Shown here: positions 6,555 to 62,802 of the stretch, piece after piece
Layout: each line of letters opens with the position of its first letter
Position numbering within the stretch: the first letter of the stretch is position 1
From: Octopus sinensis
Lineage: Eukaryota
Direction of reading: 5' to 3'
Length of the DNA: 64,000 bases
Assembly (NCBI RefSeq): GCF_006345805.1
Contig: NC_043002.1
Span: forward strand, 12,772,001 to 12,836,000
Position numbers and translations under genes: made by a program
The notes under the pieces: model-generated
Database searches by the model: none
Told to the model about the DNA's origin: nothing
The model's input: the letters and a program-made list of their open reading frames with translations, nothing else

Positions 6555-6673
6555 TTTGCAGTTTTAAAGAACTTTATTTTTCACAAACAAGCATTTCTAA
6601 AAGTTATTGTATTTCAAGTCTTACTGGTTACAGAAAACAGCCTTGCGATCATTGCTGATCTTGAAACGCAATT
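6555..6673 (-). other. Candidate terminal exon 3 of the CBM14 gene (acceptors also at 25337, 44219, 61635)
   Basis: Acceptor TTTTGTATATTTCAG|AA. Splicing from exon 2 gives the stop T|AA. AATAAA at 6578-6573. Conserved in all four units. The 3' end is approximate. Confidence 0.4.
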
Positions 6674-7004
6674 CTGAAATATACAAAATATGAATATATA
6701 CATAGATATAAAAAAGATATAAAAATGCTTTTAAAAATCTAGAAGTTAATCTTATCTTCCAAAAATAAATCCTTGTAGGTAAAAGACTTAAATTAGAAAA
6801 TTGCGATCAAGTGTCTATAGTATTTGCATAATTTACTATTTTTCTTTAGCCCTGGGACACATCGGAACGCTTAATCAATTACCATGGCATATTACTGACG
6901 AAGATCAAAATATTCCATATGAACGTGACTTTGGTCCATCACAGTATATATGGCCAGCAATTTCCAATGACGATAGAAGCCGATACCAATAACACCATTT
7001 TATA

Positions 7005-7237
7005 TTCATTTCTTTACTGCCCACAAGGGGCTATACACAGAGGGGACAGTCAAGGACAAACAAACGGATTAAGTTTATTATATCGACCCCAGCGCGTAAC
7101 TGGTACTTATGTAATCGACCCCGAAAGGATGAAAGGCAAAGTTGACCTCGGCGGAATTTGAACTCAGAACGTAACAGCAGACGAAATACGGCTACGCATT
7201 TCACCCGGCGTGCTAACGATTCTGCCAGCTCGCCGCC
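7005..7237 (-). mobile_element. tRNA-derived SINE with conserved core (decayed relatives at 7248-7450, 14385-14568, 17185-17285 and in the other units)
   Basis: Minus-strand GGCGGCGAGCTGGCAGAATCGTTAG (A-box) ... GTTCAAATTCC (B-box) ... CCTTTCATCCTTTCGGGGTCGAT. Confidence 0.75.
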
Positions 7238-7661
7238 TTACATAATCTTTTCTACTATAGGAACAAGGCCTGCAATTTTGTGGAGGGGACTAGTAGATTG
7301 CGTGAACCCCAGTATTTCACTGGTACTTATTTTATCGACCACGAAAGGATGAAAGGGTGAAGTTATACTCGGCGGAATTCGAACCCGAGTATAAACAGCC
7401 GGAACAAACAAAGCTAAGCCTTTTATCCGACGCTCTAAAGGGATTGATAACTCACCGTTTTAAACGGTTTCAAATTTTGATAGAAGGCGAATCATAGAGG
7501 AGTTAATGTTTGTCCAATTTCCATCTCATCTACCAAAACCATTCTGACAGTTTTACTATTACTATGGCCGCTAGGACTCTAGATCTTTCTGTAATGCGAT
7601 AATTTAGAAATAAAAGTGTCAAACGAAATATGATAAAATGAAATATAAAGAAGTTACTTAC

Positions 7662-7841
7662 ATTGGTTTTGACAATATGGCGGAGGAATTTCGCTACATC
7701 TTTGAGTTTGGGGATCAAAGAAAAGATTGAATTGACACGGCATGGAAGGGTATGAGGTACGCTTGAAACAGGGAATATACCTGTGGCAGTCAGCAGGGTC
7801 ACGGTTCATCCCGTCTGGGTATTGGTTACAGAGAGGATCAT
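7662..7841 (-). CDS. CBM14 gene A exon 2: domain 2 (180 nt, phase 1-1)
   Basis: Acceptor TTTTCTCTTCAG| and donor |GTAAGT. In frame with exon 1 it reads DDPLCNQYPDGMNRDPADCHRYIPCFKRTSYPSMPCQFNLFFDPQTQRCSEIPPPYCQNQ (CX13CX5CX10CX12CX7C). Confidence 0.92.
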
Positions 7842-59076: not shown

Positions 59077-59602
59077 GGAAAAAAGCAACAAGAATGGATC
59101 AAAATATCGGTACAATTGTTTCGTACGAAAACATCTTTAATAAGGCTACAAAAATTGCAGTAAATATAGAGGGCTCGTACTCATCAGCCGAAAAAACATC
59201 CGAGATTTCCAAACATCAAAGGGGGTAAAGTTACACTCGTGAAACATCATCGAAAGTTCTATAAAAATGGAAATTTAGATAAGAAATTGGTTTCTAAGAT
59301 TTCAATTAGTATTACACAGTCATATATCAGGTTTTTAAAAAGTATTTTCAAAACATCTTAGTTTCCCAGAAAGTGAAGAAAAAAGTGAGGGTGTGAATAT
59401 ATCCATATTGAAGAAAGTTGGATTCCTGGAGATATGAGGAGAAGTATTGTACTCACAGAATATGCGTTTGTCCATATATAGATTTTTTCGGCTGATGGGT
59501 ACGAGCCATCTATATTTACTGCAATTTTTGTAGCCTTATTAAAGATGTATTCGTACGAAAGAATTGTACCGATATTTTTATCCATTCTTGTTGCTTTTCT
59601 CC
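59077..59602. mobile_element. MITE copy D
   Basis: Same TIRs and TA flanks. Confidence 0.85.
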
Positions 59603-62600
59603 TATTTGTAATCACCCCACTTTATCGTATGGTTAACACCATATAGATTTCTGGTGCATTTTAGTGAAGTACTTTATTCATGTGAATTCAATAGAACTCA
59701 TTTGAATCTTAATTGCTTAAACCGTATATATATATATATATATATATATATATATATATATATATATATATAAACTATCACTCCGTCGGTTGCGACGATC
59801 AGAGTTCCAGCTAATCCAAACGATGGCCTTATCGTGAAATTACCTTTGCTGAGCACTCATAAACATACATACACTTATCTTAGTTTCTTTGAATGAATAT
59901 CTTAAAAGGAAACTCTCTAAGAAATCCCATCATATTCATACATATACAAATAAATATTTGTCTGTGCTAACTACATCCCCAAGGATGGAGCCTTGTATCT
60001 TTGCTGAAAACCGGCTCCCTCTTCATTGGAAGATTTATAATTATTAGAAAATTGAAGATACACGCATACACACACACACACACACACACACACACGCACA
60101 CACACACATACATAGAGAGGTTTTTGCGTATTAACACAACCAATGATTTCATGTGGAAGGTATCTCCAGAATTTTTTCAGACAATCCTTTGAAAGTTGAT
60201 AATCGCCTCAGTTGTTAACTCCCTTACACTGGCCCTGGAATGTTGCAATAATTTGCGTTCGCTACAGATTAATAAATTCTTTAATTATCTTAAGCGTCCA
60301 AAATCTATGAAATCACCAAAATGATTATAAGCTCAATATCAGGTATCAAAACACACACACACACACTTGGTAATTAAGGAATTAGTAATTAATAGTGAAC
60401 GCATATAATTGCAAAACTCCATGGCCAGTGCAGAGGAGGTAAAAATTGCTATGGGTTAGCTCCCCTGATCTGTATATTTATTTTGAAATCCTGCGTAACC
60501 TTGCGTAGTTTCGTGTCTTCTCAAACGAAACGGACTTTATTACCATTTTCATATATTTATCCATAAATAAATGATACTTATTCACCAATGCAATGTTGAG
60601 TATTCATTCTCAGATTTCGATACTAACGTCTATATATATGTAAGTGTGTGTGTGTGTGTGTGTGTGTGAAGGTGCAATGGCCCAGTGGTTAAGGCAGCGG
60701 TCGTGAGATCGCGGTTTCGATTCCCAGACCGGGCATTTTCAGTGTTTATTGAGCGGAAACACCTAAAGCTCCACGAGGCTCCAGCAGGGAGTGGTGGCGA
60801 ATCCTGCTGTACTCTTTCACCATTACTTTCTCTCACTCTTTCTTCTGTGTTTCTGTTGTACTTGTATTTCAATGGGTCTGCCTTGTGACACACTGCGTCA
60901 CGCTGAATCTGCACGAGAACTTCGTTCAGGACACACAGCCACTTACACGTTACTTTTCCGAGCAGGCTATTCCGTTGATCGGATCAACTGGAACCCTTGT
61001 CATAGTAACCGATGGAGTGCCACGACATGTGTGTGTGTGTGTGTGTTTGTTAGTTTGTTTGCACCTCCGTGACCTAGCGGTTCGGCTAAAAGACTAATAG
61101 GAAAAGCATCAAACTTAAAACATAAGTACTTAAGTCGATGTTTTTGACGAAAATCCCTTGAAGGCGCTGACCCACCATAGTCGCAGCCCAATGACTGAAA
61201 GCAGTGTTATAGAACTTACCAGCTGTAATCAAAAAGTATCCAACCTTTTTTTTATTTTGCACAAAATAACAAAGCGTGAGCAAAATCTGCATGGGTATAC
61301 GCAAAGATTTCCCCCTGCAGTGATGTGTTGGGTACAGCCTTGAAGTGTGCTGTGAGATTGTTAAAGTCAAATTTTAAAAAAATATTACTTGCTTTTTGGC
61401 CAAAGTTCGGATAATGTTTGTCTACACCTAGTATTTGTAAATTTATTGGAATTTATAAATATTATGCACTAAAATGTTTCAGAATTCAAAAATTAAAGAA
61501 ATGGATGAAAATCAGATTTGCAGTTTTAAAGAACTTTATTTTTCACAAAAAAACATTTCTAAAAGTTATTGTATTTCAAGTCTTACTGGTTACAGAAAAC
61601 AGCCTTGCGATAATTGCTGATCTTGAAACGCAATTCTGAAATATACAAAATATGAATATATATATAGATATAAAAAAGATATAAAATTGCTTTAAAAAAT
61701 CTAGAAGTTAATCTTATCTTCCTAAAATAAATCCTTGTAGGTAAAAGACTTAAATTAGAAAATTGCGATCAAGTGTCTATAGTATTTGCATAATTTACTA
61801 TTTTTCTTTAGCCCTGGGCACATCGGAACGCTTAATCAATTACCATGGCATATTACTGACGAAGATCACAACGTTACATATGAACGTGACTTTGGTCCAT
61901 CACAGTATATAAGGCCAGCAATTTCCAATGACGATAGAAGCCGATACCAATAACACCACATTATATTCATTTCTTTACTGCCCACAAGGGGCTATACACA
62001 GAGGGGACAGTCAAGGACAAACAAACGGATTAAGTTTATTATATCGACCCCAGCGCGTAACTGGTACTTATGTAATCGACCCCGAAAGGATGAAAGGCAA
62101 AGTCGACCTCGGCAGAATTTGAACTCAGAACGTAACAGCAGACGAAATACGGCTACGCATTTCACCCGGCGTGCTAACGATTCTGCCAGCTCGACGCCTT
62201 ACATAATCTTTTCTACTATAGGAACAAGGCCTGCAATTTTGTGGAGGGGACTAGTAGATTGCGTGAACCCCAGTATTTCACTGGTACTTATTTTATCGAC
62301 CACGAAAGGATGAAAGGGTGAAGTTATACTCGGCGGAATTCGAACCCGAGTATAAACAGCCGGAACAAACAAAGCTAAGCCTTTTATCCGACGCTCTAAA
62401 GGGATTGATAACTCACCGTTTTAAACGGTTTCAAATTTTGATAGAAGGCGAATCATAGAGGAGTTAATGTTTGTCCAATTTCCATCTCATCTACCAAAAG
62501 CATTCTGACAGTTTTACTATTACTATGGCCGCTAGGACTCTAGATCTTTCTGTAATGCGATAATTTAGAAATAAACGTGTCAAACGAAATATAATAAAAT

Positions 62601-62622
62601 GAAATATAAAGAAGTTACTTAC

Positions 62623-62802
62623 ATTGGTTTTGACAATATGGCGGAGGAATTTCGCTACATCTTTGAGTTTGGGGGTCAAAGAAAAGATTGAATTGACACG
62701 GCATGGAAGGGTATGAGGTACGCTTGAAACAGGGAATATACCTGTGGCAGTCAGCAGGGTCACGGTTCATGCCGTCTGGGTATTGGTTACAGAGAGGATC
62801 AT
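62623..62802 (-). CDS. CBM14 gene D exon 2 (exon 1 expected right of the window)
   Basis: Same splice sites and peptide as the other copies. Confidence 0.9.

Follow-up and report, generated by a model that had tools for sequence, protein, structure and literature searches.

A tandem array of secreted two-CBM14 genes in Octopus sinensis, homologues of the squid chitin-binding beak protein 2

The stretch of DNA considered here, a 64-kb window on a chromosome of Octopus sinensis (GCA_006345805.1, CM016864.1:12,772,001-12,836,000), carries on its minus strand three complete genes of three exons each, together with the 3' portion of a fourth; they encode a secreted protein of 152 amino acids (aa) with two chitin-binding domains of the CBM14, or peritrophin-A, type. 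These genes form the identical-protein core of a longer array, in which at least 11 genes share one strand over ~210 kb of CM016864.1. Judged by sequence homology, they are octopod homologues of the chitin-binding beak protein 2 of the squid Dosidicus gigas (DgCBP-2), and the overall reading that we consider probable is that of a tandem array of DgCBP-2 homologues coding for secreted two-CBM14 proteins of a chitin scaffold. For the octopus genes we infer chitin binding, expression in the beak, and a benefit of gene dosage.

The structure of the genes follows from their splice signals and is the same in every copy. In copy 1, exon 1 (15809-16085, minus strand; 277 nucleotides (nt)) starts with the ATG at 16085, encodes the signal peptide and the first CBM14 domain, and ends at 15809 in a phase-1 donor, followed by GTAAGT; the exon recurs without a single nucleotide difference at 34684-34960 in copy 2 and at 51367-51643 in copy 3. 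Exon 2, a 180-nt exon of phase 1-1 located at 7662-7841 in copy 1, encodes the second six-cysteine CBM14 domain; it lies between an acceptor, TTCTCTTCAG, with a pyrimidine tract and a CAG, and a GTAAGT donor. It is found again at 26325-26504 (copy 2), 45207-45386 (copy 3), and 62623-62802 (the partial copy 4, whose exon 1 lies past the right edge of the window), with 0-2 nt differences that are all synonymous, because the encoded peptides are identical. Exons 1 and 2 join in frame (G|AT, giving Asp). Exon 3 begins ~990 nt downstream of exon 2, at 6673, 25337, 44219, and 61635 (TTTCAG|AATTGCG...), and in all four copies its first two letters, AA, turn a T into a TAA stop (T|AA). The product is thus a 152-aa protein reading MEFRFVAAILLIAVSTVYSQSIMTLC...YGGRF|DDPLC...PPPYCQNQ. 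The remainder of exon 3 is 3' untranslated region (UTR) with an AATAAA signal ~95 nt downstream of the exon start, conserved in all four copies, at 6578-6573, 25242-25237, 44124-44119, and 61540-61535; with 3' ends that are approximate, the four exons span 6555-6673, 25219-25337, 44101-44219, and 61517-61635. All splice sites are canonical, and every splice signal, as well as the 60 nt 5' of the ATG, is identical among the copies.

Intron 1 measures 7967 nt in copy 1 (7842-15808), 8179 nt in copy 2, and 5980 nt in copy 3, and in copies 1 and 2 it houses a retrotransposon of the type that lacks long terminal repeats (non-LTR) together with fragments of short interspersed elements (SINEs). A tblastn search of the whole window at E<=10 recovered three copies of exon 1 (starting at 16085, 34960, and 51643) and four of exon 2 (7841, 26504, 45386, and 62802), each at 100% protein identity, and found no further CBM14-like exons that might represent extra domains or pseudo-exons. 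A first-pass annotation, made from the letters alone, had proposed a phase-1 exon joined to a 180-nt phase 1-1 exon across an intron of ~6-8 kb filled with transposable elements, three complete copies plus exon 2 of a fourth, and a product of 152-154 aa; the joins, the phases, the domain content, and the copy count all hold, and the range of lengths is explained by the two possible ends: splicing to exon 3 gives 152 aa, whereas an unused exon-2 donor would append CK* (...QCK*) and give 154 aa.

That annotation also called the array hidden, on the grounds that the track of open reading frames (ORFs) displays exon 2 only in a wrong frame. The observation itself is accurate: at the default cut-off of 60 aa, exon 2 lies only within a 90-aa wrong-frame ORF, and its true frame yields just a 51-aa ORF initiated by ATG. 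The array is hidden from a prokaryote-style ORF track only, however, because public annotation already lists the genes. The 152-aa protein is letter-for-letter identical to RefSeq XP_029637263.1, XP_029638288.1, XP_029638391.1, and XP_029638395.1 of O. sinensis, which are named 'uncharacterized protein' and assigned to LOC115213521, LOC115212745, and two further loci, and the genomic DNA of the RefSeq genes matches the window at 15336-44960 with 100% identity over 29,625 bases. The annotated coding sequences (CDSs) of copy 1 (16085..6672, 9414 nt) and copy 2 (34960..25336, 9625 nt) exactly match the reconstructed exons, and that of copy 3 ends at 44218, as in the reconstruction. Since these extents agree to the base, the annotation pipeline reached the same three-exon model. 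The array is therefore already known in the form of exact gene models in RefSeq and is nothing new in kind; tandem expansion of CBM14 genes is commonplace.

The two halves of the predicted protein, scored separately, both match the Pfam family CBM_14 (PF01607) above its gathering cut-off of 22.1 bits, with 37.3 bits (E 3.1e-9) for the exon-1 peptide and 31.0 bits (E 2.7e-7) for the exon-2 peptide, and the check proposed in the first-pass annotation, a search with the joined product, likewise places both domains above the gathering score. The leader, MEFRFVAAILLIAVSTVYSQ, is a predicted signal peptide, judged by eye. Peritrophin domains carry six cysteines in the range CX13-20CX5-6CX9-19CX10-14CX4-14C. 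The octopus protein has this pattern in both domains, CX17CX5CX9CX12CX9C in domain 1 and CX13CX5CX10CX12CX7C in domain 2, and all 12 cysteines (C26, 44, 50, 60, 73, and 83, followed by C97, 111, 117, 128, 141, and 149) are invariant in 16/16 family members. An AlphaFold2 model of the protein, with a mean pLDDT of 77.9 and a mutual orientation of the two domains that is not reliable, predicts the disulphide-rich beta fold of tachycitin in these domains; Foldseek matched the model to the CBM14 domain of CHIT1, to Der p 23 (TM score 0.75 on the target), to tachycitin, and to Avr4.

The closest characterised relative of the octopus protein is a squid beak protein. A profile built from the family matches DgCBP-2 (annotated as 'Chitin binding beak protein 2', UniProt A0A0G2UIZ7) with E 2.1e-40, and the pairwise alignment shows 53% identity over 103 aa (residues 21-121; E 1e-39). 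This alignment runs gap-free across the junction of exons 1 and 2 (...YGG..DPLC...), and, since the squid sequence is derived from mRNA, the transcript of the homologue joins the two domains in the same way. The octopus protein also has the architecture of the DgCBP-2 family, a signal peptide plus two CBM14 domains in ~150-160 aa, and paralogues in Octopus vulgaris carry the name 'binding beak 2'. The DgCBPs are one of two protein families of the squid beak, from which they were recovered, and a proposed role is to form, together with chitin, a scaffold that is later infiltrated by histidine-rich proteins. The earlier guess of a chitin-matrix protein of beak, radula, gut, or skin fits this homology. 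The mature octopus protein of ~130 aa would be secreted by a cuticle-forming epithelium, most likely the beak-forming cells, with the lining of the radula, oesophagus, or suckers as other possible sites, and both domains would bind chitin fibrils and so help to build a chitin-protein scaffold. Unequal crossing-over between units might have enlarged the array, and the usefulness of high output might explain why several identical copies have been retained.

Several observations weigh against this interpretation or parts of it. The gene models that agree with the reconstruction are XP_ predictions, and agreement with them is therefore no proof of splicing. In the protein collection searched, the exact 152-aa product occurred on the chromosome record only, with no short transcript-like contigs, and a literature search with six of the LOC identifiers found no paper mentioning them; a search with the DgCBP-2-type protein name and the UniProt accession likewise found no relevant paper. 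The 3' end is ambiguous between the 152-aa form made through exon 3 and the 154-aa form made by read-through, and one Octopus bimaculoides model ends in ...QCK, as the read-through form would. With regard to function, the top match in the Protein Data Bank (PDB) is EHEP of the mollusc Aplysia, both with the profile, which aligns over both domains (E 3.8e-12), and with Foldseek (E 5e-7). EHEP comes from digestive fluid, binds phlorotannin or tannic acid, precipitates phlorotannins, and shows no chitin binding.

These structural matches underlie the alternative that survives best, namely that the genes and their array are real, but that the protein is EHEP-like and binds polyphenols, catechols, or gut xenobiotics in digestive fluid or mucus. 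EHEP, whose cysteine pattern is CX15CX5CX9CX12CX5-9C, and Der p 23 share the CBM14 fold without chitin-binding activity, and EHEP thus illustrates that the fold alone guarantees no chitin binding. However, DgCBP-2 is a much closer relative than EHEP, whose identity to the octopus protein is just 22-26%; EHEP has three domains, whereas the octopus protein has two; and the DgCBPs were recovered from the beak itself. We consider this alternative unlikely, and the reading as a chitin-matrix protein of the beak is ranked first because DgCBP-2 is by far the closer relative. A combination of the two properties is nevertheless conceivable: with EHEP as the nearest solved structure, the protein might, by analogy, bind the catecholic cross-linkers of beak tanning in addition to chitin.

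How the copies relate to each other bears on the remaining alternatives. Self-alignment of the window reveals head-to-tail units at offsets of 16.7-18.9 kb with 94-98.5% identity, all on one strand and with a complete gene per unit. When neighbouring DNA around other paralogues is included, exons 1 and 2 alternate in a regular order on a single strand between 12.670 and 12.879 Mb, in 10 complete exon 1/exon 2 pairs and two half-genes that flank an unread stretch of 23 kb. The next gene to the left has its exon 1 starting at window position -1476. A leftward continuation of the array had been predicted from a match at 738-814, and this match proves real: the segment at 738-821 (plus strand) is a remnant of the region that precedes that next gene, ~91% identical to the segment located ~1 kb upstream of each exon 1 in the window (17078-17160, 35934-36016, and 52695-52777). 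Other genes of the array are 91-96% identical to the core genes when exons are compared singly and 92-95% identical in the complete protein, and the gene at 12.879 Mb is much more diverged than other members.

Within the core, the pattern of variation is strikingly uneven. Non-coding DNA differs by 2.6-5.5% between units, and around exon 1 there are 2-5 variable columns per 100 nt among the three units, yet none over the 300 nt of 16119-15820, and variation resumes directly after the exon-1 donor. Pairs of CDSs in the window have a nonsynonymous divergence (dN) of 0 and a synonymous divergence (dS) of 0.01-0.02, corresponding to 1-2 synonymous changes. That non-coding DNA has diverged by 2.6-5.5% without any amino-acid change speaks for purifying selection and makes an assembly artefact less likely. 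Gene conversion may have contributed but is not needed to account for the identical exons, the variation-free block coinciding almost exactly with exon 1. The same type of gene is conserved between species, as an independent assembly of O. vulgaris contains one array gene whose CDS is identical at 456/456 nt within flanks of only 96-98% identity; in the 45 kb of O. vulgaris DNA examined, this is the only copy of the window protein type, and a second, different paralogue lies 19 kb downstream. In O. bimaculoides and in Argonauta hians, too, a single scaffold carries several annotated paralogues. In sum, these sequence comparisons argue for genuine, selectively maintained paralogues, as opposed to assembly duplications or pseudogenes.

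Between paralogue types the balance differs, with dN about equal to dS (0.03-0.05 each) or above it (e.g. 0.038 vs 0.017), while the cysteines never change; with 9-25 substitutions per pair, these ratios are noisy, such that relaxed or diversifying evolution of surface residues is only a hint. It is tempting to combine these patterns into a scenario in which the four identical-protein copies are a very recent expansion specific to O. sinensis, the older types have evolved with dN at or above dS, and the protein possibly binds catechols. If this were true, a matrix protein of the beak or cuticle would have been tuned adaptively in its amount as well as in its surface chemistry, but the scenario as a whole strikes us as distinctly unlikely.

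A dN close to dS between paralogue types is also a pattern frequent in defence gene families, and, together with a fold shared with tachycitin and with peritrophin-type chitinase domains, it could point to a chitin-binding immune protein, of the tachycitin-like antimicrobial kind, or to a peritrophin-like protein of the gut barrier, instead of a structural protein of the beak. Against this stand the nearest characterised homologue, which is a beak protein, the noise in the ratios, and the strict conservation within one paralogue type, between species as well as within O. sinensis; the proposal is quite improbable. Finally, the idea that a single real gene was multiplied by false haplotype duplication or a mis-expanded repeat in the assembly, for which the identity of the coding exons might speak, is highly improbable: the units differ in non-coding sequence, length, and content (units 1, 2, and 4, but not unit 3, contain a 3.9-kb long interspersed element (LINE), and only unit 3 has a retrocopy of SAMM50), a pair of haplotypes could not account for four or more copies, the array comprises at least 11 diverged paralogues within 210 kb, two tandem copies separated by 19 kb are present in the independent O. 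vulgaris assembly, and O. bimaculoides and A. hians have their own sets of paralogues.

Two side observations concern other gene models of this family. Intron 1 varies widely in length outside the window, being ~17 kb long in the two genes directly to the left (CM016864.1, 12.726-12.771 Mb) and only ~2.3 kb long in LOC115213541. In O. vulgaris, one of the models named 'binding beak 2' (CAI9724914.1, 188 aa; OX597819.1, 121.83-121.87 Mb) is a chimera that consists of exon 1 and a partial exon 2 of one gene, then parts of exons 1 and 2 of the next gene, and whose last part is exon 3 translated in a different frame (...RIALQDQQ); gene prediction is evidently misled by identical exons in tandem.

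The SAMM50 retrocopy deserves a description of its own, although it is not part of the CBM14 gene in whose intron it lies. Intron 1 of copy 3, and of that copy only, contains on the plus strand, and thus antisense to the gene, an insert at 46196-48122 with an intact intronless ORF of 456 aa (46313-47683) that spans a full Omp85 domain (E 5e-53) and whose best solved relatives are mitochondrial Sam50 proteins. A bacterial origin or contamination was considered for this Omp85 ORF and rejected: it encodes an animal SAM50, identical to the protein of a 19.5-kb multi-exon gene on O. sinensis CM016874.1 and of its O. vulgaris orthologue. Window positions 46194-47985 are colinear with 14 exon blocks of the CM016874.1 parent and differ from them at 8 of 1792 nt, two of the differences being synonymous C-to-T changes in the CDS, at 46663 and 46771, and the others falling in the 3' UTR. 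The last 137 nt of the insert (47986-48122) did not align to the parent locus DNA compared, and neither a poly(A) tail nor a target-site duplication was resolved. (TA)n tracts border the insert, units 1 and 2 lack it, and its flanks are contiguous in O. vulgaris, which thus preserves the empty site. From the colinear exon blocks, the 8/1792 differences, and the empty O. vulgaris site, it follows that this is a very young processed retrocopy, which was inserted after the duplication of the units. It is already annotated as a gene in the record.

The remainder of each unit is largely made up of mobile and repetitive DNA. The non-LTR retrotransposon of intron 1 is ~3.9 kb long, with Exo_endo_phos_2 and RVT_1 ORFs on the plus strand, antisense to the host genes, and is located at ~8325-12266 in unit 1 (ORFs at 9745-12459), at 26989-30855 in unit 2, and at 63.3-64.0 kb in unit 4. 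It is also present in the O. vulgaris orthologue and cleanly absent from unit 3 (at 45870), which could reflect either a deletion in unit 3 or an insertion that later spread among units. Each intron 1 additionally contains an (AAT)n-rich tandem repeat of 417 nt (13137-14009, 31809-32890, and 48768-49563), with 2-3 copies, the number varying among units, and intron 2 of every copy contains two tRNA-derived SINE fragments (e.g. 7235-7095 and 7384-7319). No other host gene was recognised among the long ORFs of a unit, which encode LINE endonuclease and reverse transcriptase (RT) or an RT fragment or have no family match.

Between the genes, every unit has a pair of plus-strand ORFs of ~290 aa and 264-427 aa (17823-19993, 36689-38548, and 53414-55677). 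They have no confident family match; the longest gives a sub-threshold match to GIY-YIG (E 9e-4) that would be consistent with a retroelement of the Penelope-like type. These ORFs are adjoined by (TTC)n arrays (20251-20469, 39117-39363, and 55917-56084), to which a strong negative GC skew is due. At the left end of the window, the stretch 1-1250 has no counterpart in the other units save for the 84-nt match at 738-821; a 153-aa ORF on its minus strand (328-789) matches the RT family RVT_1 (E 4e-16) and represents a retroelement inserted in this unit alone, upstream of the gene that follows to the left.

These results place octopod homologues of DgCBP-2 in a single array of at least 11 genes around a core of identical copies, and hence provide a ready case for studying the copy-number evolution of a biomaterial gene. 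The 'uncharacterized' loci would merit the label of beak proteins only after tests of expression and binding. The array also shows that spliced eukaryotic genes can be correctly reconstructed from raw sequence.

Set beside the systems already known, the genes of the window correspond fully to the RefSeq LOC models, with the same protein, locus, exon joins, and CDS ends and no sequence difference. The arthropod peritrophins and the CPAP1 and CPAP3 cuticle proteins (PMC3504105) are also secreted, carry one to several six-cysteine CBM14 domains, are made by cuticle-forming tissue, and are often encoded by multigene families; they belong to another phylum, and their resemblance to the octopus proteins is at the domain level only. 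EHEP of Aplysia kurodai (25 kDa; PDB 8IN3/8IN6) is a secreted mollusc protein that, after a cleaved leader, consists entirely of peritrophin-A domains, but its three domains are arranged in a triangle, compared with two in the octopus protein. A CBM14-type domain from the beak itself, CBD-gamma of DgCBP-3 (PDB 7BWE/7BWO), whose structure was solved in complex with a chitin oligomer, is matched by the family profile at residues 23-77 (E 8.5e-5); this similarity is much weaker than that to DgCBP-2, and CBD-gamma is a single domain from a larger multi-domain protein. Even DgCBP-2 departs from the octopus proteins in part, as the deposited squid sequence diverges completely after ...RFIPCFNHT (residues ~124-158), leaving the last three cysteines of domain 2 unaligned and the conserved half SYPSMxCQ...QRC...C lost. 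This divergence may be due to a frameshift in the transcriptome-derived entry or to an alternative 3' end. It is, moreover, only in the squid family that localisation to the beak and association with chitin are documented. In its overall design, however, DgCBP-2 resembles the octopus protein: both are small and secreted, of 158 and 152 aa, respectively, and both combine a hydrophobic N-terminal leader with two CBM14-type domains.

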